Below, piece after piece: positions 2,908-64,000 of a stretch of 64,000 nt of DNA (position 1 is its first letter; each line of letters opens with the position of its first letter). Under the pieces are notes generated by a model, which did not search any database, was not told the origin of the DNA, and saw only the letters and a program-made list of their open reading frames with translations. The translations under genes and the position numbers were made by a program. This stretch comes from Anthoceros angustus. Taxonomy: Eukaryota; Plantae; Anthocerotophyta. Location: positions 556,581-620,580 of the forward strand of contig MU008158.1 of assembly GCA_010909165.1 (NCBI GenBank), read 5' to 3'.

Positions 2908-3035
2908 GTTAAGCGTCCTTGGTGGGATCGGTTTTTGAAAATCCAGAGTTAAGTATACTTACCAGGATCGATTCTTGGCTGCGATATTATCCATGGGAGG
3001 ATCCGTTAAGTGTCCTTAGGTGGATCGGTTCTTGG
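2908..3035. repeat. Three imperfect ~30-bp direct repeats (GTTAAG...GATCG.TTYTTG)
   Basis: Copies start at 2908, 2948 and 3005. Confidence 0.6.
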
Positions 3036-3334
3036 GTGGGGTGTTGTCCATGGGGGATATGTCCAAATGGATATAGATTTGCGCTTCAATCGGTATTTAC
3101 ATGGGTTGTCTAAAGGAAGTGGATGCCCTTGTTGCAAGTAGCTTAGGCCCTCCATGGTAGAAGTTGTTAAGTACCAAGTCCCATAATAGGAACATTCCGT
3201 CCAAGTGAACTATGATATATTCTTTTTCTTCTTCTTGGATGGGGTGTTGTGCATCCCTAGCTATAAATATCATGCTCTTGTCTCCCAATGTATAGGGTCA
3301 TGGGTTGTTAGTACTCTACAAGGTTACTTCAGTC

Positions 3335-3431
3335 GTTATGGCCCTAAGAGTTACTTTCCGTTATGGCCCTAAGAGTTACTTTCCTTTATGGCCCTACGGG
3401 TTACTTCCCATTATTGCCCTACTGGTTACTC
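3335..3431. repeat. 25-bp tandem repeat x4 (gttatggccctaagagttactttcc)
   Basis: Two perfect copies followed by two degenerating copies. Confidence 0.85.
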
Positions 3432-7800: not shown

Positions 7801-8155
7801 CCTTGGCCGTGCAGGCCGACTGGATGACGCACTAGCTTTGGTGAGGACAATGTCTGTGCTGCCTAATGCTGCAGTCTGGCACAGTGTGTTGGGTGCTTGT
7901 CAAAAGTGGAGAAACGTGGAGGTGGGACGCCATGCCTTTGAACAAGCGATAGGGCTAGATAAGAAAGATGCTGCAGCATACGTCTTGATGTCGAACATTT
8001 ATACAGGTGCCCAGATGTGGGATCAGGCAAAGAAGATCTTGGAGATGAGAAAAGCATTTAGGGTATGGAAACAGCCTGGTCAAAGCTGGTGGACAGACAT
8101 GGACGGCCAGGTGCATAGTTTTCTAGCTGGGACTAAAACGCATCTTGACGGTTGA
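4888..8155 (+). CDS. PLS-class E+ PPR protein (PPR2), organellar RNA-editing specificity factor; start uncertain
   Basis: ORF 4835..8155 (1106 aa) has repeated P (VVTWNAMIAGYSQQG), L (VTFVCLLQACAS) and S (SLVNMYAKCGSLEDA) motifs, P2-L2-S2, E1/E2 and WKQPGQSWW...VHSF. The ATG homologous to those of PPR1/PPR4 is at 4888, in another frame (see findings). Confidence 0.93.
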
Positions 8156-13900: not shown

Positions 13901-13957
13901 AAGGCTGACGCAAGTAGTGAACAAAATGACGAAAGGAGCCAAGCCGGCGTGAAGTAG
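10940..13957 (+). CDS. PLS-class E+ PPR protein (PPR3); 5' leader disrupted
   Basis: 1005-aa ORF with P-L-S triplets, E1/E2 and WKQPGQSWWTDMDGLVHSF; no HxE/CxxC deaminase motifs. Confidence 0.93.
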   Translation: MALTSETVTKLCHQGHVKQAVEALGVLVETDCCVSRSLFYAVVKECVVKKNVVLGRRVHAFTVRKGYGADTFLCNHILRMYASHGRLQEAMDVFTVVAEPDAFMWSSIISAHVKHGRDKEALQLYRLMRGSSVKPDGHVFVAALQACARVADLRTGQDLHADVLASGVEPDVFVCSCLVHMYAKCGSLDDAQSVFDGLGEKNVVTWTALIAGYSQQGMGQQALALYRVMQAEGIDVPNSVTFVCLLQACASVGTSALELGKQLHAELRERGHLSDMIVANSLVNMYAKCGSLKDAQRLFDGLDKRDVATWNAMMAGYSQQGMGQETLSLYSAMQEEGMVAPDPVTFVCLLQACASVGTSALEIGNEIYAQVRERGYEADVFVTSSLVNMYAKCGSLEVAQRLFDGLGQKNVVTWNALMAGYSQQGMGKEALHLYSAMREEGLAVPDSVTFACVLQACARCGNLEDARTVFNGLCRKDVVMWNAMIAGYSQQGMGQEALLIYSAMQAEGVAVPDSMTFVFLLQACAGIGTPALEMGRELHAQIRGYGHQADVFVASSLVNMYAKCGSLRDAQRVFDRLGRKDVVTWNAMMGGYSQQGLGEEALCLYNVMEEDGVTAPDSVTFVCLLQACASVGTAALEKGMQLHAQIRERGHEADAFVGTSLVNMYAKCGRLEDAQRVFGILRHKDVVTWTTMIAGYSQQGMGQEALRLYSAMQKECFAVPDSMTFVCLLQACANVAALHLGRQLHAQIKEQGLQGEVYVAASLINMYSKSGSLLDAQEVFDAMSHRDVASWSALIAGYACLGDSESVFNLVQRMEEDGIQPDSITFLSVLTVCSHANLVDEGREYFEAMSKLYKIPPTLEHYTCMLDLLGRAGRLHEALALVSTMPLLPNAAVWHTLLGACQKWRNVEVGRHAFDQAVKLDKKDAAAYVLMSNIYRGVQLWDQAQEMHARRKDFRAWKQPGQSWWTDMDGLVHSFLVGDDKASPESRKADASSEQNDERSQAGVK

Positions 13958-18956: not shown

Positions 18957-19038
18957 CCGGAGCAACACAGACGGCGGGTAAATACATTGCCTGTGGGTGC
19001 GACGGTGCGACTTAACACGTATATGTAGATCGCCTGTC

Positions 19039-19046
19039 TATATATA
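19039..19046 (-). promoter_or_regulatory. Candidate TATA box for the ZNHIT6-like gene
   Basis: TATATATA about 85 bp upstream of ATG 18956. Confidence 0.35.
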
Positions 19047-19374
19047 TTCTGGATGCCTAACGTAGGACTTCTCTAATAGGCAATCGCTCTCCCAAATTGT
19101 AAAAGTCCGCGAAAGTGATAATTTGGTAGGAAAGTATCGTGACTTGAGCCCATCGCCCATCGAGCAAAAGGACATCACACGAGACCCCTAGGGTGGTAGT
19201 AGTAAGAGGGAGCATCTAAAGTTTCCCATGGTTTTTATTAGGAAGAATGAAAGGCCTACATATTATAGAGGTTGGAGAGGAAGCATCACTTCTATGGTGG
19301 CCGTCCTATCTTTAAATGCACCTTGGAGGGCAATGGACATCCGCTGCCAAAAAGAATGTCGCGACTCATGAGAG

Positions 19375-19438
19375 AGGTAGCCCTGCATCATGTCAACAAC
19401 CCTAATAGGTAGCCCTGCATCATGTCAACAACCCTAAT
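19375..19438. repeat. 32-bp direct tandem duplication
   Basis: aggtagccctgcatcatgtcaacaaccctaat x2. Confidence 0.9.
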
Positions 19439-19698
19439 AGGCTTTAACGAAGGACTTGATAAGTTTAGCAAAGTCCTAAGTCAATACCCCGTACGTTTCC
19501 AAGGCAAGCGAGATGAATTGGTGGCCTACTTGCATCCTCTTTCCTTCTTAGTCTTGGCTGTCATCCAACCTGGATGATTAGTAATGACATGTGTACAAGT
19601 GGCGTCTCGTGTAGGGTCAGTGACCACCATGTCTGCCACTGTGACTTGGTCACCTTGAACAAGGTACAAGTCAGCCCTAACCGTCTAACCTGTGCAAA

Positions 19699-21095
19699 GA
19701 GTGTACCAAATTATGCTCCCTTCATGTCGTATAATCACTTTCGCGGGCCATTGCAAACATGACGTCCAGAAATTAATGTTATCATGGGTGGCAATGCAAT
19801 GACCCCCATTGGAACAACGAGCAAGATATATCCCACGTGCATCAAGGCAGAGCTGCATTCACAAGAAGGAAAGGGGGAAGCCATTGGTTGCACCAAGCCC
19901 ATACACAATCACATCTCAGTTGTGGAAGTTGTTAGTGCAATGTGGAACCCTTAGGTACATGGACGAGCCAGTAGCCAAGAACCCACACCCTTCCCATGAC
20001 ATGAGCGAAGACGGGCTCTTGTGGACCTTGAGATGGAGATGTCTAGAAGGATGGACTTCAAAATTCCTTGCCATCAATCCACCGGTTTCAAGTCATGTTG
20101 CTGTTCCGCCCTATCTCGGATCATTTGACGTTGAGATAATCAGCGAGCTAATCAGCCAACACATTGCCCTGGCTTTCATGCTTTTGGCTACTTTGCGAAA
20201 TATTGTAGCGGACACTCCAAACATTGCTGCCAAAGTTATAAATGCCATAGTCACACAATGCTTCACTTCCTATATGAAATTCCAGAATACGTCCTGATTT
20301 ACCATTTGTGCAATTTTTTCTTGTGGTGAATGTTGAATAAATTCTAATGGGAGACTAAGATGCGTGAGCTTTGGCCTCTGCTTGATAGGGAATCTGGGGC
20401 GTTCATGTTTACTCATCCAGATCCAGATCCTAGAGCATCGTGGCCAAGCCATCACTATCATGTGTGCAAGTAATTAATTAATTATAGTAATTAGGAAATA
20501 AGTGATAATTAGGTATTTTCGGGAATTAAGAAATGGATAACTCCATGGAATGTATGAGAGCCCAACCTGAAATAGGTTGACTGCGAAGATGGTGGGAGAA
20601 AGCAGTGAACATGATCTGGTGGCCGCAAGTAGGCGCAAGATGGTGATTGCGAGAACGGCGAGATACCGGCAGCCAAGTCTAGGAACAAAACCATACTCAT
20701 TGCAAGATTGAGTAGCTGTAAGCTTGTATCTTCTGATAAAAAATCTAATGTGTGTGTGTTTGCGAGATAATACAATCGTGTGCAGATTGAAGAGTTTGGC
20801 TATAGCTCGAAGTGGGTTGAGGTTGAAGTGTGGAAATGACTGTACTTTGTGGTGTGTGTGAATGCGTGGGAGGGGGCGAAAATCTTATTGTACATGCAGC
20901 CTGCGTAGAACGCATTGTTGTGCATGTATGTATGTGCATATATACAAGCCACAATGACTTGCCAATTGCCTCGCTGGAATCACGAAGAGAGCATAATTTG
21001 GTACACTCCCAATTGCCAATTGCCTCGCTGGAATCAGCTCAAACTTTTTATGGTGCCCGAGATTCAGGGGTAAGGGAGCATAATTTGGTACACTC
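19699..21095. mobile_element. Possible non-autonomous DNA-transposon relic bounded by a 24-bp perfect inverted repeat
   Basis: 19699-19722 gagtgtaccaaattatgctccctt is the exact reverse complement of 21072-21095. No TSD or transposase is seen. Confidence 0.3.
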
Positions 21096-26348: not shown

Positions 26349-26359
26349 TGGTATCAGAG
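26349..26359 (+). other. tRNA-iMet primer-binding-site-like motif (TGGTATCAGAG), possible LTR-element remnant
   Basis: 11-nt match to the canonical plant LTR-retrotransposon PBS; no paired LTR or downstream gag is seen. Confidence 0.3.
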
Positions 26360-27460
26360 TTATCTCTCGATTACTAGGTCCACAATGCATTATGATGTGA
26401 ATCTAGATGTTCTTCTTATACTATAGAATATCGTACTAATACCTTTGGTGTTTGCTTTATGAAACTACTTTATATTCATACTTATTCTTAGTTTCATCTA
26501 TGTTCAACTAAACATATTTTCCTAATAAAATAGTTTAACTTTTCTATAATTAATATTTATATTCCTTAAAGTTTCACCCTCAATTCGGTTCGCTACCAAA
26601 GCGGACACAAGCAAGCATGAAGGTAAACGTATCGTATAAAGAAAAATTTGGTGTGGAAAAAACAAAGTGCTCCGTCCAGTTTGGTAAGCCGTACTCCAGC
26701 AGCAAAGAAAACTTTAAACTCACCGGGTGGGAGGAAGTTCGGTGCGAAAACAAAGCAGGTTGAGTTTGTGTGCGTGACGGCTTTGGTTGGGTCACCCTCA
26801 ATTCACTCCGCACCTCAGTTCGCTCCGTGCTGTGTGAAGAAAAGTTTGGTGTCCCGTCCCCTCTGTCCTGTTTGTTATGCAATACATGGGTCCGCTCGTT
26901 GAGTCTGGAAACCTTGGAAAACTGACAAAGCAAGGACGAGAAACTACCTTCCGGAGTGTCCGTAGGTCAACGCGCACGTTGTCTGAAGAGCGGGAGTCGC
27001 GGACTCGGGAACACAGAATGTGCTCGACCTCCCCACGCTCCACCCTCCGATGGAACCGAGCTCACATATATCCACCGAATTTATTAGCTGCGAGGATCCC
27101 GAGGACACATTCCGCCCTCTCCTCTTGTCTAGGAATCCTGATTGATGGAATACATTTCTCATGCTTGATTTTTCATCCTCAAAGCTAGCAGCTGCACTCT
27201 CTACAGATGTAGATGTTGGTTCTCTTTTCTCTTGTTGGACGCAGCATTCTCCCCCCGGAGATGGCTGTTGAGAGATTAAAGCAGCGAGGGTGGGACCGCC
27301 TATGAAAAGCGGACCTCCAATCATGCATCCAGATGTCGCACCAACCCGCACCAGCTCACGGCGGGGCGATGTCGATGCGGGTTCTTGCTTCTTAGTCTTT
27401 CGCTTCTCTGCCAACTACGCTGCAATGGCTTCATGAGAGATCCGTTTTCTGCGGAAGGAA

Positions 27461-48893: not shown

Positions 48894-51800
48894 ATGGCCG
48901 GCTTCAAGGTGGCCGGATTCGCTCAGGTTCTGGAGCGGCTGGAGGCGGAAGCGCCGGCATCAGGAGGTCTCCAGCAGCCTACTGGCGCTGAGCGAGTGGT
49001 GTTCAAAGTGCCGGCTGAACGGAAGTCTGTTCTAGGGCTTGATGCCCTGGCTCGAGCCAAGAGAGCAGCCGAGGGAGAGCTGCCCGGCGCCGGGGCCAAG
49101 CGGACGCATGTGGAATCGGAAGCAGCATCAGCAGCAGCTCAAGACCGGGATATCGATGATCAGCGGGAGCAGCAGGAACAGGAGCAAGGTCACGATGAGG
49201 AGCAGGAGAAATTGCAGGAGAGGAAGGCGCCTGGAAATGGAGCTCACCCGGGGCCGAGCAGCAGGATCGTGGCGGGGAGGAATTACCGTAGCCTGCGCCC
49301 GCCGGACACGCCGTCTCATCCAGGAGGAGTGAACGAGGATGTGGCCGCCGCCATTGCCAAGCGGGCCAAGGACAGGCGACCGCCGCTGGATCCCGCTCGG
49401 AACCGCGGGAGGGACGACCGGTGGAACCCGGGCGGTGACCGGCACAGGCCGCCACGGAGCGAGGATCGGAGCAGGGAACGGGACAGGGATTGGAGGGACG
49501 GGAGGGAGCTGGGTTCGCGGAGCAGCGGGAGCGGGAGCGGGAGCGGGAGCGGGAGCAGCAGGGGGTCGAACCAGCACCAGCGGAGGAGCTCGAGCTCGGC
49601 GTGGGACGATGGGAGGTGGGAGTGGGAGGACACTCCTCGGCGGTCAGGATCGTCGAGGGAGCACTCCCGGGGGCCTCCGTCGCCTGCGCCGTTTATCCCG
49701 CCGTCGCCGGCGGAGTCGCTCCTGGTGTCGCCTTGGGGCGGGGACACTCCCTACGACCGGGGCGTCGGCGTGGGACATGGCGTCGCCTGCCCCGGAGAGG
49801 ATACGGGCCGGGAGCGCGGCGTCGAGGGAGAGTTCCGGGAGTGGTGGGCGGAGGGAAAGGCATCACATGACGTTCAGGCAACAGGGGAGCTCAGCGTCTG
49901 GGGATGGGCAGGAGATTGTGTTCCGGAGCAGGAGGCAGCTGACTGAGGAGGAGATGCGGGCGGAGATGGAGGCTGCGGAGATGGTGTCCGACAGGTCGTG
50001 GTACGACCGGGATGAGGGGGGTTCCACTGCGTTCGAGGCGGAGGGGAGCGAGCCGTTTTTGGGCGACGAGGCTACGTTCAAGAAGAGGGAGGCTGAAATG
50101 GCGAAGCGACTGACGCGGAGGGATGGGTCGCAGATGAGTCTGGCTCAGAGCAAGAAGCTCTCGCAGCTGAGTGCGGATAATGCGCAGTGGGAGGATCGGC
50201 AGCTTCTCAGGTCGGGGGCGGTGCGGAGCACGGAGCAGCAGACGGAGTTTGATGACGAGGAGGAGAGCAGGGTGATTTTGCTGGTGCATGATACCAAGCC
50301 ACCGTTTCTGGACGGGAGGGTGGTGTTTACCAAGCAGTCTGAGCCCGTGATGCCGGTTAAGGATCCCACGTCTGACATGGCTATTATTGCGAGAAAGGGT
50401 TCTGTGCTTGTTCGGGAGATTCGGGAGAAGCAGAGCCAGAACAAGTCCCGGCAGCGGTTCTGGGAGCTTGCTGGGTCGAAGTTGGGGAACATTCTGGGGG
50501 TTGAGAAGACGGAGGATCAGATTGATGCTGACAATGTTGAGGTGGGTGATGAGGGTGAAGTTGACTTCAGGAAGAACAACAAGTTTGCGACTCACATGAA
50601 GGACAATAAAAGTCAGGCTTCCAGTAACTTTGCGAGGGAGAAGACTTTGATGGAGCAGAGGCAGTATCTGCCGATATTTTCTATAAGGGATGACCTTCTC
50701 CAGGTGATTAGGGACAACCAGGTGATAGTGGTTGTTGGAGAGACGGGATCTGGAAAGACTACTCAGATGACTCAGTATCTGCATGAGGATGGATATACTA
50801 GGAACGGCATGATTGGTTGTACTCAGCCCAGGCGTGTGGCAGCGATGAGTGTTGCTAAGCGTGTCAGTGACGAGATGGATTGTGAGCTAGGTGAGAAGGT
50901 TGGATATGCTATCCGATTCGAAGATGTCACTAGCGACAAGACTGTCATCAAATACATGACAGATGGTGTGCTTCTTCGAGAGACGTTGCGAGAGTCTGAC
51001 CTTGACGGTTACAGTGTGGTGATTATGGACGAGGCCCATGAACGATCTCTGAACACGGATGTGCTGTTTGGCATTCTGAAGCAGGTTGTGGCACGCCGAC
51101 GAGATTTTAAGCTCATTGTGACTTCAGCGACTCTGAATGCTCAGAAGTTCTCCAATTTCTTTGGGAGTGTTCCTGTATTCCATATCCCAGGGCGAACGTT
51201 TCCTGTGAACATTCTTTACAGCAAGACTCCTTGTGAAGATTATGTGGATGCAGCAGTCAAGCAAGCCATGGCAATACACATCACCTCTCCGCCAGGTGAT
51301 ATTCTCGTTTTTATGACTGGCCAAGACGAAATTGAGTGTTGCTGTTTTGCACTAGCAGAACGAATCCAGCAATTGGAGGACAGCTCAGACAAGGCAGTGG
51401 CTCCTCTGTCAATTCTTCCCATATACTCTCAATTGCCAGCTGACCTGCAGGCCAAGATATTTCAGAAGGCAGATGATGGTGCTCGCAAGTGTATAGTGGC
51501 CACCAACATTGCAGAGACATCCTTAACTGTGGATGGTATTTACTACGTCATTGACTCGGGGTATGGAAAGATCAAAGTCTACAACCCGAGAATGGGTATG
51601 GACGCGCTACAAGTTTTTCCGGTGAGTCGTGCAGCAGCAGATCAACGCTCTGGCCGAGCAGGCCGTACGGGTCCAGGAACTTGCTATCGCCTCTACACGG
51701 AAACAGCTTATCAAAACGAAATGTTGCCGAATCCGGTGCCAGAGATTCAACGCACCAATTTGGGCAACGTGGTTTTGTTGCTGAAGTCTCTCAAAATTGA

Positions 51801-52767
51801 AAACCTGCTGGACTTCGATTTCATGGACCCACCACCACAGGAGAATATTCTGAACTCCATGTACCAACTGTGGGTTCTGGGTGCTCTGGACAATGTAGGT
51901 GGGCTCACGTCTTTGGGACGGAAGATGGTGGAATTCCCTCTCGATCCATCTCTAGCAAAAATGCTCCTGATGGGGGATGAATTAGGCTGTGTGAGTGAGG
52001 TTCTGACCATTGTGTCCATGCTGTCAGTTCCTTCAGTCTTCTTCAGGCCAAAAGACCGTGCTGAAGAGAGTGATTCTGCAAGGGAGAAGTTCTTTGTGCC
52101 AGAAAGTGACCACCTTACTCTCCTAAATGTGTACCAGCAATGGGAAGCTAACCAGTGTCGGGGTGATTGGTGCAACGATCATTATCTGCATGTGAAGGGC
52201 CTTCGTAAAGCTCGAGAGGTGCGTTCTCAGCTTCTTGACATTCTGAAGATGCAAAAGATAGCACTGTCTACATCACCTTCTGATTGGGATATGGTGCGGA
52301 AGGCAATTTGTTCATCTTATTTCCACAACTCTGCCCGTCTCAAAGGTGTTGGTGAGTACGTGAACTGCAGGACGGGCATGCCCTGTCATCTCCATCCAAG
52401 CAGTGCCCTGTATGGGCTCGGATATACACCGGACTATATTGTCTATCACGAACTTGTCCTGACCTCAAAGGAGTACATGCAATGTGTCACAGCTGTTGAG
52501 CCGCAGTGGCTTGCAGAGCTGGGTCCAATGTTCTTCTCAGTGAAGGACTCCAATACGTCGAGACTTCAACAGATTCGGAAGCAGCGAGAGGAAAAGACAG
52601 CTATGGAGCAGGAAATGGATGAGCTACGGAAGAGGCAAGCTGTGGAAGAGGAGATGAAGAAGGAGAAAGAACAGGCAGCACGACAGAAGGAGAAGCAGAC
52701 ATTGTCCACTTTTAGCCGGAGAGAACCTGGAACGCCAGCTCGTACTCCCAGGCGGCTGGGCCTGTAG
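48894..52767 (+). CDS. PRP16: Pre-mRNA splicing DEAH-box helicase PRP16/DHX38, apparently intronless, with a +1 frameshift near 49750
   Basis: N-terminal [14 protein letters not shown] and WEWEDTPRR (ORF 48894); [38 protein letters not shown] and HA2/OB regions (ORF 49339). Confidence 0.95.
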
Positions 52768-53386
52768 AGATGGGATCATCTCCAGATTAACTGCAGACTT
52801 GCAGTCGGGCACTTGATCTTTTTTTCACGACCTCAGTATATGCTCCTGGGTGTATTGTATGTCAAAAGTTTTTCCACAGTTTCGGTCCGATCTGTGATTT
52901 TTTTCGTTTGTAGGATCACTTCCTGTCATCAATTGCTTGGAACATTCCTTCCAATCGTGGTTGATTGTGGAGGTTCACTGTGTGGTTTCTCAGGCTTTAC
53001 ACATATTTGTCGAAGAGAAAAGGCTGTCAACGGCTGAACCAAGGGTGTTTATGTGACAGCTATTTGAGCTTAGGATTTTCTAACGGTGAGATGGGTAACA
53101 ACCTTGAATGGTTACTTAAGTTATCACTACTATGTTTGAGGTGTGCTTCGGTGGTGGTCTGATGAGGCTGCCTATCTCCTGTCACAGTTTTGCAGCCGCT
53201 GGAAGAGGACGGACATCTAGGTGGTGCTGTATGGCAGGCTGGATTGTAGTGACGAGGGTAACTGAACGAAAGCGTACCGTCCAAAGCTTGTATATACATA
53301 GTGAAAGCCTGTAGCTAGTATGAGTGTGATTTTGTTAACTCGAGCGGCGTCTTGCATACACCGCAGCTCTTATTAGGCAGTGAGCC

Positions 53387-55510
53387 ATGTCAGTGTGGAG
53401 TGTGGTTGCACTCGAACCATCCAAATTGCAAGAGAAGCCGTTGTGCATCCGATTGAGTGTTGTAGGAACAGCTCCCTCCCGTCTAACCTCCTCCAGGAAC
53501 CAAGGCTCGGGACGCAGGCATTTTGGGAGGTGGACCATATCTGCAATCAGCCTAGTCCCAGCCCGTCAAGCTGCTCTGGATGGTCGCTCTATCTCCTACA
53601 AGAGCTTGCCGGAGGAGCGGCCGGAGTACGGCAGGCGCGTGTCGGGCAGAACTGTGAGCAAGCTATGCCAAGACGGCCATCTCACTGAGGCCGTTGAGGC
53701 TTTGGAGTTTCTGGTGCACACCGGCCGTTCTGTCTCCAAAGCTTTCCTCTACGCAGTCCTGAAGAAATGTGCAATCAAGAAGGAACTTGGTCTGGGAAGC
53801 CGCGTCCATGCTTTGACTGTGAGAAAGGGGTACCAGGCAGACCCGTTCCTGTGCAACCACATACTGCGGATGTATGCTTCTCATGGCAGGTTGCAAGACG
53901 CGATGGATGTGTTTCAAGGTGTTGCCTCACCGGATGCCTTCATGTGGTCATCCATAATCTCTGCGCATGTTAAGCATCGACGAGATGGGCAGGCCGTAGA
54001 ACTGTACCATCGGATGCGCAGGTCCAGCGTGAAGCCAGACGGGCATGTGTTTGTGGCAGCCCTCCAGGCTTGTGCCAGGAGCGGAGACTTGAAGTCCGGC
54101 CAGCGGGTGCATGCTGATGTTTTGGCCAGTGGCCTTGAGCCTGATCTATTCGTCTGTAGTGGCTTGGTGGACATGTATGCAAAGTGTGGCAGCTTGGAGG
54201 ATGCGAGGGGTGTGTTTGACGGACTTGGAGCGAAAAATGTGGTAATATGGAATGCTATGATCGCTGGCTATTCCCAGCATAACATGGGCCAGGAAGCCCT
54301 GCGTCTTTACAGTGCTATGCAAGAAGAAGGCAAGGCACCCAATGGCGTTACATTTTTGGCTGTGCTGCAGGCATGTGCAAGTGTTGGCACCCCGGCCTTG
54401 GAGAAGGGGAAGCAGCTTCATTTAAAGATCAGGGAACTAGGGCATGAAGCTGATGTATTTGTAGCCAGCAGTTTGGTCAACATGTATGCAAAGTGTGGGA
54501 GCGTAGAAGACGCGCAGACGGTGTTTGACAGGCTTGGTCACAAAAATGTGGTCACATGGACTGCCATGATAGCAGGATATTCCCAGCAGGGGATGGGCCA
54601 GGAAGCCCTTCGTCTTTACAGTGCTATGCAACGAGAAGGATTGGCGGTACCCAATTCTGTGACATATATGTGCCTCCTCCAGGCATGTGCAGATGTCGCA
54701 GCTCTGAATTTAGGAAGGCAGCTTCATGCACAGATTGTAGATCAAGGGCTTCAGGCTGATGTGTGTGTAACCGGCAGTCTGATTAACATGTATGGGAAGT
54801 GTGGGAGTATGGTTGATGCACAGCAGGTGTTCGACGCGTTGCGTGAAAGAGACCTTGTCGCCTGGAGTGCACTGATTGCAGGCTACACCTATCAGGGTGA
54901 AAGTGAAGTGGTCTTTGGCTTAGTACAAAGAATGAGAGAGGATGGACGGCAGCCAGACAGCATCACATTCCTCAGTCTACTAACAGTATGCAGCCATGCG
55001 GGTCTGGTGGAGAAGGGCTGGGAGTACTTTCATGCCATGGCCAGCCAGCACGGCATCACTCCTACAGTGGAGCACTACGCTTGCATGGTGGATATCCTGG
55101 GCCGTGCAGGACGGTTGGACGAGGCACTGGCGTTGGTGAACTCAATGCCTGTATTGCCTACTACTGCAGTTTGGCACACACTGCTGGGTAGTTGTCGAAA
55201 GTGGAGGAACGTGGATGTGGGACGTCATGCTTTCAATGAAGCAGTGAAGATAGACAAGAAAGATGCCGCAGCACATGTGTTGATGTCAAATGTCTACGTT
55301 GGTGCGCATATGTGGGAGCTTGCACGGAAGATACAGGCGAGGAGGAAAAAAATCAGGGCGTGGAAGCAGCCAGCGCAAAGCTGGTGGACAGACAAGGACG
55401 GACTTGTGCACAGTTTCTTGGTTGGGGATGAAAAGCTTCCGGAGAATCGGACAAGTGTGACTCTTGAACTTTCGAAGGTGAAGGGTACATTCGGTATCGT
55501 ATGTATCTGA
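53387..55510 (+). CDS. PLS-class E+ PPR protein (PPR4), shortest paralog
   Basis: 707-aa ORF with leader MSVWSV..., P-L-S triplets, E1/E2 and WKQPAQSWWTDKDGLVHSF. Confidence 0.93.
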   Translation: MSVWSVVALEPSKLQEKPLCIRLSVVGTAPSRLTSSRNQGSGRRHFGRWTISAISLVPARQAALDGRSISYKSLPEERPEYGRRVSGRTVSKLCQDGHLTEAVEALEFLVHTGRSVSKAFLYAVLKKCAIKKELGLGSRVHALTVRKGYQADPFLCNHILRMYASHGRLQDAMDVFQGVASPDAFMWSSIISAHVKHRRDGQAVELYHRMRRSSVKPDGHVFVAALQACARSGDLKSGQRVHADVLASGLEPDLFVCSGLVDMYAKCGSLEDARGVFDGLGAKNVVIWNAMIAGYSQHNMGQEALRLYSAMQEEGKAPNGVTFLAVLQACASVGTPALEKGKQLHLKIRELGHEADVFVASSLVNMYAKCGSVEDAQTVFDRLGHKNVVTWTAMIAGYSQQGMGQEALRLYSAMQREGLAVPNSVTYMCLLQACADVAALNLGRQLHAQIVDQGLQADVCVTGSLINMYGKCGSMVDAQQVFDALRERDLVAWSALIAGYTYQGESEVVFGLVQRMREDGRQPDSITFLSLLTVCSHAGLVEKGWEYFHAMASQHGITPTVEHYACMVDILGRAGRLDEALALVNSMPVLPTTAVWHTLLGSCRKWRNVDVGRHAFNEAVKIDKKDAAAHVLMSNVYVGAHMWELARKIQARRKKIRAWKQPAQSWWTDKDGLVHSFLVGDEKLPENRTSVTLELSKVKGTFGIVCI

Positions 55511-55653
55511 TAATTGGTGCAGGCACAGGGCGAAGCTGTCGACCTTGTACGCCCTAAGCAACACTTCCGAGATGACCATAATAAATGTGAACTTCTCCTC
55601 ACTGTTACATCATGATGAATTGAGTCCATGTCGAGAGCTTGTGGTTAACAGTC

Positions 55654-55786
55654 GAACACTCCGTGCGTCATACCACAAAATGAGACACTCCGTGAGTCAT
55701 ACCACAAAATGGAACACTCCGCGTGAGTCATACCACAAAATGGAGTTCGAACAGTCTGTGAGTCATATCACAAAATGGAGTTCGAA
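55654..55786. repeat. Four imperfect 29-37-bp direct repeats (gtgagtcataccacaaaatg core)
   Basis: Copies start near 55654, 55684, 55712 and 55749, immediately left of the large array. Confidence 0.85.
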
Positions 55787-56135
55787 TGAAATGATGGTAA
55801 ACATCTTGTACTGATTCTATGCATCAAACAATTCAAATGTATCCTTTCTAACCACTCTGACGCACGCAACCGTGGCATCCTCGGACTATCATGTACATGA
55901 TGGGAGTGGGTCGTCCCGGGACTCATGGCGCGATTCTCTCGTCCCGAGAATGTCATGTATGAGTCGCGGTGGTCCGTCGTAGGACTCCTGACGCGCACGA
56001 GTGGAACGATAACTTTGAAGAAGGTTTTAACATAACGTATAAAAATATGGATTATCTAGCTAAATCCGGTTGGTTACATAGGACTTTGAGGCTCCTTGGC
56101 TTCCGTGAATAGAGTATTTCAACTGAGTTTTATAG

Positions 56136-56743
56136 CTAGTGACCACGAAGCAGGTTAATGCAATTGTAATGACTTCCTCCGTCGTACCATATGGTGATGG
56201 TACGTGAATCATTCTTGCGCGCTTTGGTGGGCTCATACGTCTGCGGGGCATGACACCGCCTCGCCTCCACATAAATGCGGATGGGTCGGTGTAGAACCTG
56301 CTAGCATCGATCTCGAGTTCGCCGCCCCACTCCGTGCTCCTCTTCATCCTTTTGACATAGTCGGTGAAGTCCCCTTCGACTACATCCTCGTAAGTCCGCT
56401 TTGTCTTTCCAACTCGGCAACGGCCGGAGGACGCCCGCCACACGCCTGCCTCGTCATCCAACGGTGGTTTCAACCATGGAAGTTTGAGGCTGCCACGGAG
56501 CGGAATAGGCACTTGCCGTCCCAACGCGCCCAACTTCGTACTCATCTTGTTTGAGTATCCGAGTTCCTTTAGGTGCTACAAAGGGACCAAAAATAGTTGT
56601 CGGCGCCGTCTTTTCACGCTTGTTCACTACTTTTGATGGTGTACATGTGTCGCGTGTCTTTGTTCTCTTGCACGTTTTGCCGCCTCCACCTTGGGCGATG
56701 CATCCAAGTCCCATAGTTTGCGTTTAACCCCAACGCGCCTCAT
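56136..56743 (-). CDS. OTU-domain cysteine protease, array copy A (frameshifted as assembled)
   Basis: Pieces across frames: MRRVGVKRKLWDLD..., DGKCLFRSVA, YVKRMKRSTEWGGELEI, IWYDGGSHYNC. Confidence 0.7.
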
Positions 56744-58330
56744 CGATTCTCTTGAGTCGCAAGACTAGCTGCAATTTGTCTCTCAAGCTTTCAATGTTGC
56801 CAAGTCAAGAAAAACTTTGTGCCTAGTTTTAGAACCGGGGCCCTACTTATACCTTTGAGCTATAACGAACGCACCATGCTCCAAGGAGAAACATGTCCTT
56901 GACCTTCGACACATGTAGTTTTATTTAGAGAATGTCGACACATGTGATTTGGGGCATGAGAGGAAAAATCCGGGATCGGAAAATTAATGCACCAAATTCT
57001 CTAGAAAAGCGACAAAGCTTGCAGCAGTGACGCTCAATAGTAGTGACCGTTGAGACTTCTTGCGGGGCTTGTTGGGTCAGATTGACAAAACTCTATTGCA
57101 AGTGTTTTGTGTCCGGCGATTTAGATCGATCTTGCTCCACACGCATGTTACTCCGCCTCCTTTGATCATGACCTCATCCCGGGGTGGCATGTCGGGATTG
57201 TTTTGTCCTGTGAGTCATGACGCGTGAGTGTCGCATCCCGGAGTGGTGCGTCCGTGCGTCGGTTGTTCCGTTCACAATGTGGACTTAGTGGATGGGTGGA
57301 CTTGCCTTTAGGCATTAATTACGAGGCCTACAAAGATTTAACACTGGTCATCTTAGCTCTAGATGACGCTACGAGTTTGGTTTCGCATAATATTTAGTCC
57401 TAAGTATGGACATCATGCCCGCTCCTCTCACCCATCCACTCTTCCCAACCTTCCTCATCTCCATTGACACACGTGAAACCTTTGGTGCGCTTGCTTGGGA
57501 AGTCTTCAAAATCCGCAACCTCTTGACTACGGCGATGCATATGACTCCACGGAAGTTCCATCGTAGCTGCGGTCAGCATGCGAAAGATTGGTATCAAAAC
57601 CACGCGAGGCGTACTCGTGCACGCGCGCATGCATGATTACCACGACTCGTGTTTGCATGTGATCATCATTGTGATCTCTATGCTCGTGCCTCGTAAGCGG
57701 CGGTGGCCGTTTGGAACATGGGGAACAATGGTCTCCCTTGCGGACATCCGGTGATCGCACAATTGTAGATTCGTGTGAATTCCTAACTCATTGCGGTTGG
57801 ATGTGCAACGATCGCAAATGATGCGCTTTACAATGCAATGCTTTTACTCTATCGTCACTGCCTACCTATGTACTACAAAGTGAGACCAAGGTCCAAGGAA
57901 GAAAAAAATGAACCAATCAACGGTATAACTTACGATATTTCAAGGCCCAAGAAGATATCCTCCACGATTGCTTGCGGCTTAATTGTTTGAATCACTTTGT
58001 GTTGCTGAAGTTTGCAATTGCCCGTCGATGCCACTCGGGTGAGTTTAGGTGTACACCATCCCGGAGTGCCGATGTGCGCAAGTGTCCCGTCCGGAGGAGT
58101 TGTGTATCGCGAGTGTTCCGTCAAGGAATCTTGGCGCACGCAACCGTGCCATCCCGGGACTCTCGTGTACATGATCCCTAGGACTCGACGCACGAGTGGA
58201 ACGATAACTTTGAAGAAGGTTTTGACATAACGTATAAAAATATGGATTATCTAGCTAAATCCGGTTGGTTACATAGGACTTTGAGGCTCCTTGGCTTCCG
58301 TGAATAGAGTATTTCAACCGAGTTTTATAG

Positions 58331-58939
58331 CTAGTGACCATGAAGCGAGTTAATGCAATTGTAATGACTTCCTCCGTCGTACCATATGGTGATGGTACGT
58401 GAATCATTCTTCGCGCTTTGGTGGGCTCATACGTCTGCGGGGCATGACACCGCCTCGCACTCCACATAAATGCGGATGGGTCGGTGTAGAACCTGCTAGC
58501 ATCGATCTCGAGTTCGCCGCCCCACTCCGTGCTCCTCTTCATCCTTTTGACATAGTCGGTGAAGTCCCCTTCGACTACATCCTCGTAAGTCCGCCTTTGT
58601 CTTTCCAACTCGGCAGCCCGGCCGGAGGACGCCCGCCACACGCCCTTGCGTCTCGTCATCCAACGGTGGTTTCAACCATGGAAGTTTGAGGCTGCCACGA
58701 GCGGAATAGGCACTTGCCGTCCCCAACGCGCCCAACCGTACTCATCTTGTTTGAGTATCCGAGTTCCTTTAGGTGCTACAAAGGGACCAAAAATAGTTGT
58801 CGGCGTCTTTTCACGCTTGTTCACTACTTTTGATGGTGTACATGTGTCGCGTGTCTTTGTTCTCTTGCACGTTTTTGCCGCCTCCACCTTGGGCGATGCA
58901 TCCAAGTCCCATAGTTTGCGTTTAACCCCAACGCCTCAT
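58331..58939 (-). CDS. OTU-domain cysteine protease, array copy B (frameshifted as assembled)
   Basis: Same motifs as copy A, with frameshifts at different positions. Confidence 0.7.
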
Positions 58940-60506
58940 CGATTCTCTTGAGTCGCAAGACTAGCTGCAATTTGTCTCTCAAGCTTTCAATGTTGCCAAG
59001 TCAAGAAAAACTTTGTGCCTAGTTTTAGAACCGGGGCCCTACTTATACCTTTGAGCTATAACGAACGCACCATGCTCCAAGGAGAAACATGTCCTTGACC
59101 TTGACACATGTAGTTTTATTTAGAGAATGTCGACACATGTGATTTGGGGCATGAGAGGAAAAATCCGGATCGGAAAATTAATGCACCAAATTCTCTAGAA
59201 AGCGACAAAGCTTGCAGCGGTGACGCTCAATAGTAGTGAGCGTTGAGACTTCTTGGGCTTGTTGGGTCGATTGACAAAACTCTATTGCAAGTGTTTTGTG
59301 TCCGCGATTTAGATCGATCTTGCTCCACACGCATGTTACTCCGCCTCCTTTGATCATGACCTCATCCGGGGTGGCATGTCGGGATTGTTTTGTCCTGTGA
59401 GTCATGACGCGTGAGTGTCGATCCCGGAGTGGTGCGTCTGCGTGCGGTTGTTCCGTTCACAATGTGGACTTAGTGGATGGGTGGACTTGCCTTTAGGCAT
59501 TAATTACGTAGGCCTACAAAGATTTAACATCGGTCATCTTAGCTCTAGATGACGCTACGAGTTTGGTTTCGCATAATATTTAGTCCTGTTAAGTATGGAC
59601 ATCATGCCCGCCTCCTCTCGCCCATCCACTCTTCCCAACCTTCCTCATCTCCATTGACACACGTGAAACCTTTGGTGCGCTTGCTTGGGAAGTCTTCAAA
59701 ATCCGCAACCTCTTGACTACGGCGATGCATATGACTCCACGGAAGTTCCATCGTAGCATGCGATCAGCTCGAAGATTGGTATCAAAACCACGCGAGGAAC
59801 GTACTCGCGCGCATGCATGATTACCACGACTCGTGTTTGCATGTGATCATCATTGTGATCTCTATGCTCGTGCCTCGTGGCGGTGGCCGTTTGGAACATG
59901 GGGAACAATGGTCTCCCTTGCGGACATCCGGTGATCGCACAATTGTAGATTCGTGTGAATTCCTAACTCATTGCGGTTGGATGTGCAACGTCGCAAATGA
60001 TGCGCTTTACAATGCAATGCTTTTACTCTATCGTCACTGCCTACCTATGTACTACAAAGTGAGACCAAGGTCCAAGGAAGAAAAAAATGAACCAATCATC
60101 GGTATAACTTACGATATTTCAAGGCCCAAGAAGATATCCTCCACGATTGCTTGCGGCTTAATTGTTTGAATCACTTTGTGTTGCTGAAGTTTGCAATTGC
60201 CGTCGATGCCACTCGGGTGAGTTTAGGTGTACACCATCCGGAGTCTTGATGTGCGCAAGTGTCCCGTCCAGAGGAGTTGTGTATCGCGAGTGTTCCGCCC
60301 AAGGAATCTTGGCGCGCAACGTGCCATCCCGGGACTCTCGTGTACATGATCCCTAGGACTCGACGCGCACGAGTGGAACGATAACTTTGAAGAAGGTTTT
60401 GACATAACGTATAAAAATATGGATTATCTAGCTAAACCGGTTGGTTACATAGGACTTTGAGGCTCCTTGGCTTCCGTGAATAGAGTATTTCAACCGAGTT
60501 TTATAG

Positions 60507-61126
60507 CTAGTGACCATGAAGCGAGTTAATGCAATTGTAATGACTTCCTCCGTCGTACCATATGGTGATGGTACGTGAATCATTCTTGCGCGCTTTGGTG
60601 GGCTCATATGTCTGCAGGGGCATGACACCGCCTCGCACTCCACATAAATGCGGATGGGTCGGTGTAGAACTGTGCAGCATCGTGATCTCGAGTTCGCCGC
60701 CCCACTCCGTGCTCCTCTTCATCCTTTTGACATAGTCGGTGAAGTCCCCTTGACTACATCCTCGTAAGTCCGCCTTTGTCTTTCCAACTCGGCAACAGCC
60801 CGGCCGGAGGACGCCCGCCACACGCCTTGCGTCTCGTCATCCAACGGTGGTTTCAACCATGGAAGTTTGAGGCTGCCACGGAGCGGAATAGGCACTTGCC
60901 GTCCCCCAACGCCCAACTTCGTACTCATCTTGTTTGAGTATCCGAGTTCCTTTAGGTGCTACAAAGGGACCAAAAATAGTTGTCGGCGCCGTCTTTTCAC
61001 GCTTGTTCACTACTTTTGATGGTGTACATGTGTCGCGTGTCTTTGTTCTCTTGCACGTTTTGCCGCCTCCACCTTGGGCGATGCATCCAAGTCCCATAGT
61101 TTGCGTTTAACCCCAACGCGCCTCAT
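60507..61126 (-). CDS. OTU-domain cysteine protease, array copy C (frameshifted as assembled)
   Basis: ORF 60507..60821 contains GDFTDYVKRMKRSTEWGGELEITML and TITIWYDGGSHYNCINSLHGH*; GDGKCLFRS at about 60880-60906. Confidence 0.72.
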
Positions 61127-62686
61127 CGATTCTCTTGAGTCGCAAGACTAGCTGCAATTTGTCTCTCAAGCTTTCAATGTTGCCAAGTCAAGAAAAACTT
61201 TGTGCCTAGTTTTAGAACCGGGGCCCTACTTATACCTTTGAGCTATAACGAACGCACCATGCTCCAAGGAGAAACATGTCCTTGACCTTCGACACATGTA
61301 GTTTTATTTAGAGAATGTCGACACATGTGATTTGGGGCATGAGAGGAAAAATCCGGGATCGGAAAATTAATGCACCAAATTCTCTAGAAAAGCGACAAAG
61401 CTTGCGTGATGACGCTCAATAGTAGTGAGCGTTGAGACTTCTTGGGCTTGTTGTCGATTGACAAAACTCTATTGCAAGTGTTTTGTGTCCGGCGATTTAG
61501 ATCGATCTTGCTCCACACGCATGTTACTCCGCCTCCTTTGATCATGACCTCATCCCGGTGTGGCATGTCGGGATTGTTTTGTCCGAGTCATGACGCGTGA
61601 GTGTCGCATCCCGGAGTGGTGCGTCGTGCGTCGTTGTTCCGTTCACAATGTGGACTTAGTGGATGGGTGGACTTGCCTTTAGGCATTAATTACGAGGCCT
61701 ACAAAGATTTAACACTGGTCATCTTAGCTCTAGATGACGCTACGAGTTTGGTTTCGCATAATATTTAGTCCTGTTAAGTATGGACATCATGCCCGCTCCT
61801 CTCACCCATCCACTCTTCCCAACCTTCCTCATCTCCATTGACACACGTGAAACCTTTGTGCGATTGCTTGGGAAGTCTTCAAAATCCGCAACCTCTTGAC
61901 TACGGCGATGCATATGACTCCACGGAAGTTCCATCGTCGGTCAATCGCTCGAAGATTGGTATCAAAACCACGCGAGGCGTACTCCGTGCAGCGCATGCAT
62001 GATTACCACGACTCGTGTTTGCATGTGATCATCATTGTGATCTCTATGCTCGTGCCTCGTAAGCGGCGGTGGCCGTTTGGAACATGGGGAACAATGGTCT
62101 CCCTTGCGGACATCCGGTGATCGCACAATTGTAGATTCGTGTGAATTCTAACTCATTGCGGTTGGATGTGCAACGTCGCAAATGATGCGCTTTACAATGC
62201 AATGCTTTTACTCTATCGTCACCTGCCTACCTATGTACTACAAAGTGAGACCAAGGTCCAAGGAAGAAAAAAATGAACCAATCGTATAACTTACGATATT
62301 TCAAGGCCCAAGAAGATATCCTCCACGATTGCTTGCGGCTTAATTGTTTGAATCACTTTGTGTTGCTGAAGTTTGCAATTGCCCGTCGATGCCACTCGGG
62401 TGAGTTTAGGGTGTACACCATCCCGGAGTCTTGATGTGCGCAAGTGTCCCGCCCAGAGGAGTTGTGTATCGCGAGTGTTCCGTCAAGGAATCTTGGCGAC
62501 GCAACTGCCATCCGGGACTCGTGTACATGATCCCTAGGACTCGACGCCGCAGTGGAACGATAACTTTGAAGAAGGTTTTGACATAACGTATAAAAATATG
62601 GATTATCTAGCTAAATCCGGTTGGTTACATAGGACTTTGAGGCTCCTTGGCTTCCGTGAATAGAGTATTTCAACCGAGTTTTATAG

Positions 62687-63301
62687 CTAGTGACCATGAA
62701 GCGTGTTAATGCAATTGTAATGACTTCCTCCGTCGTACCATATGGTGATGGTACGTGAATCATTCTTGCGCGCTTTGGTGGGCTCATACGTCTAGGGCAT
62801 GACACCGCCTCGCACTCCACATAAATGCGGATGGGTCGGTGTAGAACTGTGGCAGCATCGTGATCTCGAGTTCGCCGCCCCACTCCGTGCTCCTCTTCAT
62901 CCTTTTGACATAGTCGGTGAAGTCCCTTCGACTACATCCTCGTAAGTCCGCTTTGTCTTTCCAACTCGGCAACAGCCCGGCCGGAGGACGCCCGCCACAC
63001 GCCTTGCGTCGTCATCCAACGGTGGTTTGAACCATGGAAGTTTGAGGCTGCCACGAGCGGAATAGGCACTTGCCTCGCAACGCGCCCAACTTCGTACTCA
63101 TCTTGTTTGAGTATCCGAGTTCCTTTAGGTGCTACAAAGGGACCAAAAATAGTTGTCGGCGCCGTCTTTTCACGCTTGTTCACTACTTTTGATGGTGTAC
63201 ATGTGTCGCGTGTCTTTGTTCTCTTGCACGCTTTTTGCCGCCTCCACCTTGGGCGATGCATCCAAGTCCCATAGTTTGCGTTTAACCCCAACGCGCCTCA
63301 T
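62687..63301 (-). CDS. OTU-domain cysteine protease, array copy D (frameshifted as assembled)
   Basis: WGGELEITML and RPIRIYVECEAVSC are visible in the ORF track; the Cys-loop region (~63070) carries small changes in this copy. Confidence 0.62.
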
Positions 63302-63767
63302 CGATTCTCTTGAGTCGCAAGACTAGCTGCAATTTGTCTCTCAAGCTTTCAATGTTGCCAAGTCAAGAAAAACTTTGTGCCTAGTTTTAGAACCGGGGCC
63401 CTACTTATACCTTTGAGCTATAACGCACCATGCTCCAAGGAGAAACATGTCCTTGACCTTCGACACATGTAGTTTTATTTAGAGAATGTCGACACATGTG
63501 ATTTGGGGCATGAGAGGAAAAATCCGGATCGGAAAATTAATGCACCAAATTCTCTAGAAAGCGACAAAGCTTGCAGTTGACGCTCAATAGTAGTGAGCGT
63601 TGAGACTTCTTGCGGCTTGTTGGGTCGATTGACAAAACTCTATTGCAAGTGTTTTGTGTCCGCGATTTAGATCGATCTTGCTCCACACGCATGTTACTCC
63701 GCCTCCTTTGATCATGACCTCATCCCGGAGTGGCATGTCGGGATTGTTTTGTCCTGTGAGTCATGAC

Positions 63768-64000
63768 GCGTGAGTGTCGATCCCGGAGTGGTGCGTCCGT
63801 GCGTCTTGTTGTTCCGTTCACAATGTGGACTTAGTGGATGGGTGGACTTGCCTTTAGGCATTAATTACGTAGGCCTACAAAGATTTAACATCGGTCATCT
63901 TAGCTCTAGATGACGCCAGCGTGAGTGTCGCATCCCGGAGTGGTGCGTCCGTGCGTCTTGTTGTTCCGTTCACAATGTGGACTTAGTGGATGGGTGGACT
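63768..64000. repeat. 151-bp local tandem duplication nested in the last array unit
   Basis: gcgtgagtgtcg... at 63768 restarts at 63919, directly after tagctctagatgacgc. Confidence 0.85.

Follow-up and report, generated by a model that had tools for sequence, protein, structure and literature searches.

Gene-bearing macrosatellites, of which D4Z4/DUX4 and the TAF11-like macrosatellite are arrays comparable to the one described here, are typically variable in copy number and heterochromatic. In the bryophyte Marchantia polymorpha, repeats of the Y chromosome reportedly embed multicopy protein-coding genes that are expressed in male sex organs. The human RS447 megasatellite carries the USP17/DUB-3 deubiquitinase gene (Burrows et al. 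2010, PMC2874809). Among plant deubiquitinases, Arabidopsis OTU4 has several splice forms (PMC3950621) and cleaves both K48- and K63-linked ubiquitin chains, an activity that requires its catalytic Cys (Radjacommare et al. 2014, PMC3950621). In the catalytic arrangement of OTU proteases, an Asp or Asn stands two residues after the His (PMC3950621).

Here, we have analyzed a 64,000-nt stretch of Anthoceros angustus DNA (contig MU008158.1, hereafter the window, in whose coordinates all positions are given), which ends in a tandem array with one OTU-type cysteine protease gene per unit. The array shows the features by which macrosatellites are recognized, i.e., near-identical head-to-tail units of more than 1 kb with one intron-free ORF each. 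It shares with RS447 the kilobase scale of the units and the presence of a deubiquitinase ORF in each of them, although the frames are broken here; the gene belongs to the OTU rather than the USP family, the host is a plant, and the unit is 2.18 kb long compared with 4.7 kb in RS447. Like the Marchantia Y repeats, the array amplifies a bryophyte gene as part of a repeat unit, but its surroundings are ordinary genes, with a PPR gene adjacent, nothing ties it to a sex or accessory chromosome, and the gene family is a different one. The OTU fold and catalytic motifs are also shared with viral and Helitron-type OTU proteases, whereas the array has no accompanying viral or transposon gene and its nearest kin are host genes. 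The gene belongs to the same fold family as plant OTU4 (At3g57810) and has the Cys box, central WGG helix, beta strand, and His box arranged in the same order, but it differs in carrying Asn in place of Asp two positions past the catalytic His, in its distinct, basic N-terminus (approximately 70 residues), in its intron-free domain, and in its tandem amplification. Considering the activity of Arabidopsis OTU4, cleavage of K48- and K63-linked chains is, by analogy, the most likely chemistry of the array protein.

The explanation that we favor, with a probability of roughly 60%, is that the array is a young, methylated, strongly homogenized, gene-bearing macrosatellite built by unequal exchange, whose damage is mostly base-calling noise; both the methylation and the noise are what we infer from the sequence itself.

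Layout of the array and content of the unit

Self-BLAST of one unit and a repeat search revealed 3.7 head-to-tail units of 2176-2195 nt, extending from position 55858 to the end of the window, with an inter-copy identity of 96.0-96.3% (gaps counted). All units are read on the minus strand. The first (2195 nt, 56137-58331) contains a broken OTU gene at approximately 56136-56743, followed by a 1.5-kb spacer, and the second (2176 nt, 58332-60507) has its broken gene at approximately 58331-58945. In the latter, the first ATG is missing through a 2-nt gap, and no other copy has the N-terminal half in frame over so long a stretch. The third unit (2180 nt, 60508-62687) has a broken OTU gene at 60507-61126, within which a 104-codon ORF (60507-60821) covers the central helix and the His box. 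The fourth (62688-64000), which is cut by the end of the window, carries a broken gene at 62687-63301 and a stretch of about 150 nt that was found duplicated near 63780-64000 by the repeat search. At the left edge lies a partial and more diverged unit (55858-56136, minus strand), recognized by BLAST and local alignment to the unit. Its homology covers 55858-55901, is interrupted by a 78-nt insert (55902-55979), and continues unbroken from 55980; this unit contains no more of the first gene than its 3′ flank. A preliminary description of this DNA had proposed a tandem, satellite-like array with an OTU-type cysteine protease gene in each unit, starting at 55860 and with OTU stops at 56136, 58331, 60507, and 62687. 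Self-BLAST, the repeat search, and the Pfam matches described below bear out this proposal, all four stop positions are correct, and the proposed start agrees with the homology edge at 55858.

No unit-like sequence was detected by self-BLAST anywhere else in the 64-kb window. The absence of an array match in TRF is explained by the unit length, which exceeds the longest TRF period (500). A higher-order repeat of two units was considered and rejected, since most variants are private to one copy. The array adjoins the downstream side of an intact PPR gene, and its surroundings are gene-rich plant DNA, in which six long ORFs of 468-1142 codons flank the array, all of them intact. A word search with the neighboring PPR protein returned thousands of PPR proteins (best identity 55%) and no orthologous locus, and exact look-up of eight proteins of the window in the protein collection found none of them.

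Approximately 100 nt upstream of the first ATG, a TATA-like element (61224-61236, minus strand) is present as an exact 13-mer with identical copies at 56841-56853, 59037-59049, and 63399-63411, i.e., four occurrences when none is expected. The stretch from this element to the ATG is invariant in the four copies, and the element may be regarded as a putative promoter. A scan for bacterial promoters and terminators was set aside as irrelevant to a plant.

The remainder of each unit is a spacer of approximately 1.5 kb (58985-60507, not assigned to a strand), which is the same in all units and contains no recognizable gene, RNA family, or internal repeat. No Pfam family was found in 68 stop-free segments of at least 40 amino acids from both strands of three spacers or in ten ORFs, and no Rfam family in 50000-64000. 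The unit itself has no internal, terminal, or inverted repeats beyond chance size. The statement in the preliminary description that the unit lacks transposase, RepHel, RT, or RNA genes was confirmed by these Pfam and Rfam searches.

The same description had also raised the idea of a concatemer of a mobile unit, or of virus or transposon cargo, which found no support. A Helitron-type element or a circular viral replicon with an OTU protease could in principle have produced the array by rolling-circle replication, considering that OTU proteases occur in viruses, that the size range of small circular replicons includes 2.2 kb, and that the third-best cluster of the array protein in the protein Atlas comes from Nucleocytoviricota. 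However, Rep, helicase, transposase, RT, capsid, and any other Pfam families are absent from both strands of the spacer in three units, no relative was found among 2.9 million viral contigs, and the sole significant relative belongs to a streptophyte host gene family. In the part of the array covered by the window, neither a hallmark gene nor terminal repeats or defined ends of transposon or viral cargo were found, and the partial, diverged unit at the left edge is what unequal exchange would be expected to leave at the border of an array. We thus consider a mobile origin very unlikely.

The OTU gene and its kinship with plant OTU4

Each unit has one recognizable gene, on the minus strand, which encodes an OTU cysteine-protease domain. 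Cys box, central helix, and His box are colinear, and the oxyanion Asp and the catalytic Cys, His, and Asn are all present. Against Pfam OTU (PF02338), the pieces score 13-18 bits each in colinear order; these were scored separately (13.3 and 17-18 bits), and the gathering score of the family is 23.3 bits. The Cys box of unit 3 (60856-60924, minus strand), with the oxyanion Asp and catalytic Cys in GDGKC, matches Pfam OTU positions 2-13 with 13.3 bits, and equivalents in other units (56473-56541 and 58659-58775, minus strand) were located with the OTU4-family HMM and tblastn. On that HMM, the Cys box corresponds to positions 197-214 (12-16 bits), and it is 78-82% identical to the protein P0002 across 9-11 residues in tblastn. 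Units 2 and 3 show the motif as GDGKC and unit 1 shows it as DGKC, in agreement with the D-G-x-C signature of OTU proteases. The central helix piece, represented by WGGELE of unit 2 (58504-58611, minus strand), occurs in every copy and reaches 17-18 bits at Pfam OTU positions 36-78 and 19-28 bits on the OTU4 HMM, with 50% identity to P0002 across 36 residues (tblastn). The C-terminal 54 codons are in a single frame in unit 1 (56139-56300, minus strand) and comprise, according to the OTU4 HMM and tblastn, the beta strand and the His box. The latter reads His-Tyr-Asn in all four copies, aligned to His-Tyr-Asp of the family, and corresponds to the His box of OTU proteases.

The best match among solved structures is yeast Otu2 (E = 0.0056); the 54-codon C-terminal piece by itself matched no OTU structure. 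The protein Atlas gave 0.93 to OTU clusters, among which Streptophyta are commonest. In a full HMMER search of 1.84 billion representatives, one true relative was found, a Mesotaenium OTU4 (44 bits) belonging to the streptophyte OTU4/At3g57810 deubiquitinases. The other three of the four hits (P0001, P0003, and P0004) were discarded as chance matches of repetitive proteins to a WYDGG stretch; for P0001, this judgment is based on 14 short matched stretches and partial inspection. The OTU4-family HMM matches only the minus strand of the array and in identical order in all four copies, and hhalign of reference-only pieces against the OTU4 family gave a probability of 96.7% (E = 3.8e-10). Together with the colinear Pfam pieces and the streptophyte OTU4 relative, this result upholds the OTU protease identity proposed in the preliminary description. 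The motifs that it had named (GDGxC, WGGxxE, and YxGxxHY) are likewise all present but are spread over different frames, and its consensus of about 205 amino acids was stitched across frames, with no such ORF existing in the window.

The array domain is only 30-34% identical to all 120 members of the OTU4 family, which is below the conservation level of an orthologue; between alga and angiosperm, the OTU4 domain is 60-67% identical. In addition, 131 residues of P0002 map onto 379 contiguous nt, so the array OTU domain has no space for introns and lacks the multi-exon structure of OTU4 orthologues. Judged by these sequence comparisons, the array gene is a divergent, intron-free paralogue of OTU4 and not an orthologue. 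Sequence damage may account for some of the shortfall in identity, though by no means for the whole. A nucleotide word search with 58258-58659 returned no match, and an exact 53-mer of the OTU gene was absent from metagenome contigs.

Copy differences, CAG/CTG loss, and frame breaks

An uninterrupted OTU frame was found in none of the copies, each of which needs 3-5 frame changes, and the frame is still broken in the majority consensus of the four copies. If the gene starts instead at the ATG that heads the ORF at 60837-61097, one frame change fewer is needed, and the basic KRKL stretch, a putative nuclear localization signal according to the preliminary description, lies upstream of that start. 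At the same time, a frame that stays open for 192 or 202 codons can be threaded through the array by using only variants found in at least one copy. It reads the main motifs and gives 49 bits (E = 2e-17) as a single domain on the OTU4 HMM. None of the four copies is in frame across the junction of the beta strand and GGVMP, and the threaded frame must skip the OTU4-like GGVMP stretch.

The array differs from the rest of the window in composition. CAG/CTG is approximately 7-fold rarer (6.6 vs. 44 per kb; observed/expected 0.19-0.23), and the drop begins at the array edge, where, from 55857 on, the median spacing of 15 nt gives way to spacings above 100 nt. CpG, on the other hand, has an observed/expected ratio of 1.06 in the array and 0.66 elsewhere. 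The CAG/CTG deficit of 37.6 per kb is offset by gains in TAG/CTA and TTG/CAA (+21.5) and in CpG (+20.6). Differences between copies are concentrated at related sites. In a comparison of three copies, 92 columns contain gaps and 51 substitutions, and a CpG is found no more than 2 nt away from 77% of the difference events (35% expected). CAG/CTG columns are variable in 23 of 26 cases, with C-G, CCG, CGA, or TCG as the alternatives, and 72% of CAG/CTG occurrences overlap a variable column, compared with 23-28% for CG-containing words and 1-10% for others. The copy alignment has 52 gap runs and 14 isolated substitution columns; of the latter, 11 are transitions and 7 fall at CpG.

This CAG/CTG- and CG-linked pattern of damage fits base-calling noise at CHG- and CG-methylated DNA, as does the intact state of the six long ORFs that flank the array, and most of the gene breaks look like sequencing noise at methylated cytosines. 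Since most differences between copies are small indels in sequence contexts of cytosine methylation, the apparent breaks would largely be a data-quality problem, and a consensus from this assembly therefore cannot decide whether the gene is intact.

Alternatively, the OTU copies might be true pseudogenes in a junk satellite with a former gene, with CAG/CTG loss resulting from C-to-T deamination of a long-methylated repeat. The broken majority consensus, one frame error common to all copies, the excess of transitions and CpG sites among isolated substitutions, and the enrichment of TAG, TTG, CAA, and CTA (the C-to-T products of CAG/CTG) all point in this direction. Furthermore, at one site whose context is free of CG and CAG/CTG, TGA stands in three copies and TCA in the remaining one, and this may be a true nonsense difference. 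Likewise, the half of the CAG/CTG loss that is matched by C-to-T products could be true deamination. However, the CpG excess is opposite to what methylation decay would produce, the copies differ at CAG/CTG sites through indels and complex changes (a simple transition in only one of 23), and the ratio of gap runs to isolated substitutions (52:14) is unlike natural mutation. Moreover, all catalytic motifs have been kept despite approximately 68% divergence from OTU4, and an open OTU frame exists within the inter-copy variation. We therefore regard a dead array as rather unlikely.

A second alternative is that noisy long reads were mis-assembled, making an array out of an OTU locus that has only one or a few copies. 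Repeats are places where assemblers fail, and because most differences between copies are noise-like, they are no proof that the copies are distinct. On the other hand, the register is regular over 8 kb with identical junctions, the edge copy is diverged and has an insert of its own, some variants are common to subsets of copies, and a few differences lie outside methylation contexts, which together make an artefact of this kind highly improbable.

Possible origin and use of the array

Under the macrosatellite explanation, a 2.2-kb segment would have been duplicated in tandem and then expanded, and the units would be kept uniform through unequal sister-chromatid exchange and gene conversion; away from gaps, only 14 columns differ in 2.2 kb. 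Like other plant repeats, the array would have been CG- and CHG-methylated in the sequenced tissue, and long-read base calling, uncorrected in the repeat, could have turned methylated CAG/CTG into CG- or T-containing strings, generating most of the frameshifts, including some present in all copies. If the breaks are noise, the OTU genes may be intact. They would then encode a small isopeptidase that acts on ubiquitin chains, like OTU4, but has a new basic N-terminus, and this protein might be made only where methylation is lifted.

If the copies are intact and expressed, the array would parallel, in a plant, the human USP17 megasatellite, with deubiquitinase dose set by repeat number and methylation, and the origin and use of gene-bearing macrosatellites would become testable in a haploid plant. 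A broader and quite speculative idea, which we think improbable, is that the genome runs a family of methylated macrosatellites, each carrying a rapidly evolving paralogue, without introns, of a protein that regulates gene expression or protein turnover. As ampliconic or selfish gene families of a plant whose haploid phase dominates, these arrays would be unmasked together in one cell type, e.g., when sperm are formed.

With respect to annotation, the combination of CAG/CTG loss and CpG gain may serve as a mark of methylated repeats in this assembly, where it would corrupt any ORF that they contain; within CAG/CTG-poor methylated repeats, neither gene models nor "pseudogene" calls should be trusted before re-calling. 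A second CAG/CTG-poor island, at 2979-4111 of the window, has no excess of CpG, which counts against the explanation that we favor.

Layout of the array and its left edge

Self-BLAST of one repeat unit against the window recovered head-to-tail copies at 56137-58331, 58332-60507, 60508-62687 and 62688-64000 (units 1-4, the last cut by the window end), with 96.0-96.3% identity and 63-70 gap positions per unit pair, and no unit-like sequence elsewhere in the window. Since a separate repeat search of the window gave spacings of 2170-2202 nt in the same register, the tandem array proposed in the preliminary description is borne out, and an assembly artefact, in which these copies would be a product of the assembly process, is considered very improbable. 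The array was not reported by TRF because the longest period of that search was 500. Local alignment to the unit revealed that the left rim is a partial copy, more diverged than the full units, whose homology covers 55858-55901 (86%), resumes after a 78-nt insert and is unbroken from 55980. The array starts approximately 280 nt downstream of the stop of the first OTU gene and 350 nt past the stop of an intact 707-codon PLS-E pentatricopeptide (PPR) gene.

Two smaller repeats were also observed. A 29-nt minisatellite (55654-55744, 3.1 copies, 88% matches) occupies part of the gap from the PPR gene to the array edge, and unit 4 contains an internal duplication in which 63780-63848 is identical to 63932-64000 at a spacing of 152 nt, the sequence returning to unit position 1078 past position 1224.

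The OTU-type gene and its reading frames

The minus strand of every unit carries one OTU domain in colinear pieces: the GDGKC Cys box comes first, then a stretch that closes with the WGGELE helix, then a beta strand and finally the His box (His-Tyr-Asn). Against the Pfam OTU model, the Cys box scored 13.3 bits (profile positions 2-13) and the central piece 17-18 bits (positions 36-78), each below the cut-off of 23.3 bits when scored singly. The best solved-structure match was yeast Otu2 (E 0.0056), and a 104-codon ORF of unit 3 was grouped with OTU clusters at 0.93 in the protein Atlas. A word search gave no match. In a full HMMER search of 1.84 billion representatives, the sole genuine relative was a Mesotaenium (alga) protein of 243 residues, at 44 bits and 34-37% identity. 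This protein is a member of the plant OTU4/At3g57810 family, in which conservation between the alga and angiosperms is 60-67%. Three other HMMER matches were rejected as chance matches to repetitive proteins. Using tblastn with the Mesotaenium protein and a family HMM built from 120 OTU4/At3g57810 members, matches were confined to the minus strand and to one order in all four copies, with family-HMM scores of 12-16 bits for the Cys box, 19-28 for the centre and 4-5 for the His box. Profile-profile comparison, with a query made from window references alone, aligned the C-terminal two-thirds with 24 OTU4 proteins (probability 96.7%, E 3.8e-10). The early assignment of an OTU-type gene is thus upheld by the colinear Pfam and HMM pieces, the Otu2 match and the Mesotaenium relative. 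Plant OTU4 is the closest protein family, and on identity and exon structure the array gene does not qualify as an ortholog.

OTU4 of Arabidopsis acts as an isopeptidase on K48 and K63 ubiquitin chains and depends on its catalytic Cys; the catalytic triad of OTUs is completed by an Asp or Asn at the second position past the His (PMC3950621). In the array gene, the catalytic Cys, the His and the Asn two residues on are all kept. Since all catalytic motifs are retained despite approximately 68% divergence from OTU4, selection acted on the gene through much of its past. The amplified copies may be in use at present, for example in a cell type with methylation lifted.

In none of the four copies is the OTU frame uninterrupted: each requires three to five frame changes, and a majority consensus of the four is still broken, so the approximately 205-aa consensus proposed earlier is a stitched reading and not a real ORF. 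An alternative start at the second ATG, heading the ORF at 60837-61097, saves one frame change. When the four aligned copies were threaded at 21-22 variable sites, each restricted to variants that one or more copies carry, an open frame resulted that spans 202 codons, or 192 if read from the second ATG, and keeps Cys box, central piece, beta strand and His box in frame. It matches the OTU4 HMM as a single domain (49 bits, E 2e-17), with 30-34% identity to every one of the 120 family members. The junction between the beta strand and GGVMP is out of frame in all four copies, and the GGVMP stretch resembles GG-I-I-S-I-Q of the family. Directly past the Cys box, the reading frame of units 1-3 contains TGA (56451-56516, 58653-58718 and 60834-60899) where unit 4 has TCA (Ser; 63009-63074). 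This G/C transversion, in a context without CG or CAG/CTG, is a candidate for a genuine nonsense polymorphism between copies.

As 131 domain residues map onto 379 contiguous bases (tblastn), the OTU domain is intron-free; five splice forms exist for Arabidopsis OTU4 (PMC3950621). Signs of retroposition, such as a poly(A) tract, were not seen, and hence the label of retrogene stays a guess. All four copies share a 13-nt TATA-like element, which precedes the first ATG by approximately 100 nt. In the spacer (the remaining 1.5 kb of each unit), no Pfam family (68 stop-free segments, three units, both strands), Rfam family or meaningful internal repeat was detected, in agreement with the initial impression that the unit lacks transposase, RepHel, RT and rRNA sequences. 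A rolling-circle or viral concatemer would be another source of such an array, and the absence of relatives in 2.9 million viral contigs, together with a spacer devoid of Pfam families, speaks against it; this origin is given very little credence.

Sequence damage at CAG/CTG and CpG

Alignment of the three full copies contained 92 gap columns versus 51 substitution columns, and 52 gap runs versus 14 isolated substitution columns, an excess that is unlike natural mutation. Of 56 difference events, 77% were within 2 nt of a CpG (35% expected; maximum 55% in 2000 random draws), and there was no tie to homopolymers. CAG/CTG occurs at 6.6 per kb in the array, compared to 44 in the rest of the window and 51 in flanking genes. 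Based on the array's own dinucleotides, its observed/expected ratio is 0.19-0.23, every other trinucleotide having at least 0.63. In 1-kb bins, the ratio is 0.13-0.30 array-wide and 0.68-1.39 elsewhere except for two small patches, and the drop begins at 55857, the array edge. CpG observed/expected is 1.06 in the array and 0.66 outside. Among alignment columns bearing CAG/CTG, 23 of 26 vary between copies, the alternatives being C-G (middle base absent), CCG, CGA and TCG, with a simple transition once only. Overlap with a variable column was found for 72% of CAG/CTG occurrences, 23-28% of CG-containing trinucleotides and 1-10% of the rest. The CAG/CTG deficit (-37.6 per kb) is about matched by TAG/CTA and TTG/CAA (+21.5) plus CpG (+20.6).

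Plants methylate repeats at CHG (mainly CAG/CTG) and CG, and short-read polishing passes repeats by. Judged from base composition and copy differences, CG and CHG methylation of the array is very probable, and the assembly is unstable at both contexts, with methylated CAG/CTG apparently written largely as other strings. Such miswriting is the effect expected of native long-read base calling with models not trained on the methylation of the sample, a general point made in PMC9749173. Six long ORFs beside the array are intact, which indicates a local sequence problem. We infer that the frameshifts in the OTU genes are largely technical and partly systematic, and for the latter reason consensus building offers no repair; the value of the finding depends on re-called sequence and expression data. 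Of the isolated substitutions, 11 of 14 are transitions, 7 of them at CpG, implying that some real methylation-driven mutation is also present, and genuine mutation could likewise underlie the C-to-T part of the CAG/CTG loss. A dead array, whose sequence decay would be real throughout, is unlikely while retaining appreciable weight.

Outside the array, an AT-rich intergenic island upstream of a PPR gene (2979-4111) is almost without CAG/CTG (3 sites in 1.1 kb versus approximately 22 expected). It holds a short tandem repeat of about 25 nt near 3330-3420, lacks a CpG excess, unlike the array, and may be a methylated transposon relic. CAG/CTG-free gaps of approximately 300 nt were also noted at 19049-19344 and 26355-26677 in a low-GC stretch (19-27 kb), the bin 19001-20000 having a ratio of 0.48.

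Origin, parallels and genomic setting

The most likely history involves tandem duplication, exchange and methylation. A copy of an OTU4-type gene that by then lacked introns and had its own promoter would have been tandemly duplicated as a 2.2-kb segment; the pair would have grown by unequal sister-chromatid exchange and gene conversion, which would also maintain uniformity, and the array would have drawn CG and CHG methylation because it is repeated. A diverged partial rim copy is the usual mark of arrays shaped in this way. Parallels include D4Z4/DUX4 and the multicopy genes found within repeats of the Marchantia Y chromosome. Nearest of all is human RS447, a megasatellite with a USP17 deubiquitinase gene in each 4.7-kb unit (PMC2874809). 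In the literature searched, no paper was found on such an array in a bryophyte, and in the Anthoceros genome paper the tandem-repeat search stopped at a period of 2 kb.

The window outside the array is ordinary gene-dense plant DNA, including a kinase, a VPS51-like gene and glycosyltransferases. Three PPR genes of the PLS class (4835-8155, 1106 codons; 10940-13957, 1005 codons; 53387-55510, 707 codons, adjoining the array) are intron-free and end in an E motif, with no DYW deaminase domain detected. A DEAH helicase with HA2 and OB domains (49339-52767) is read as one uninterrupted ORF of 1142 codons; plant genes of this type are rarely so intron-poor.
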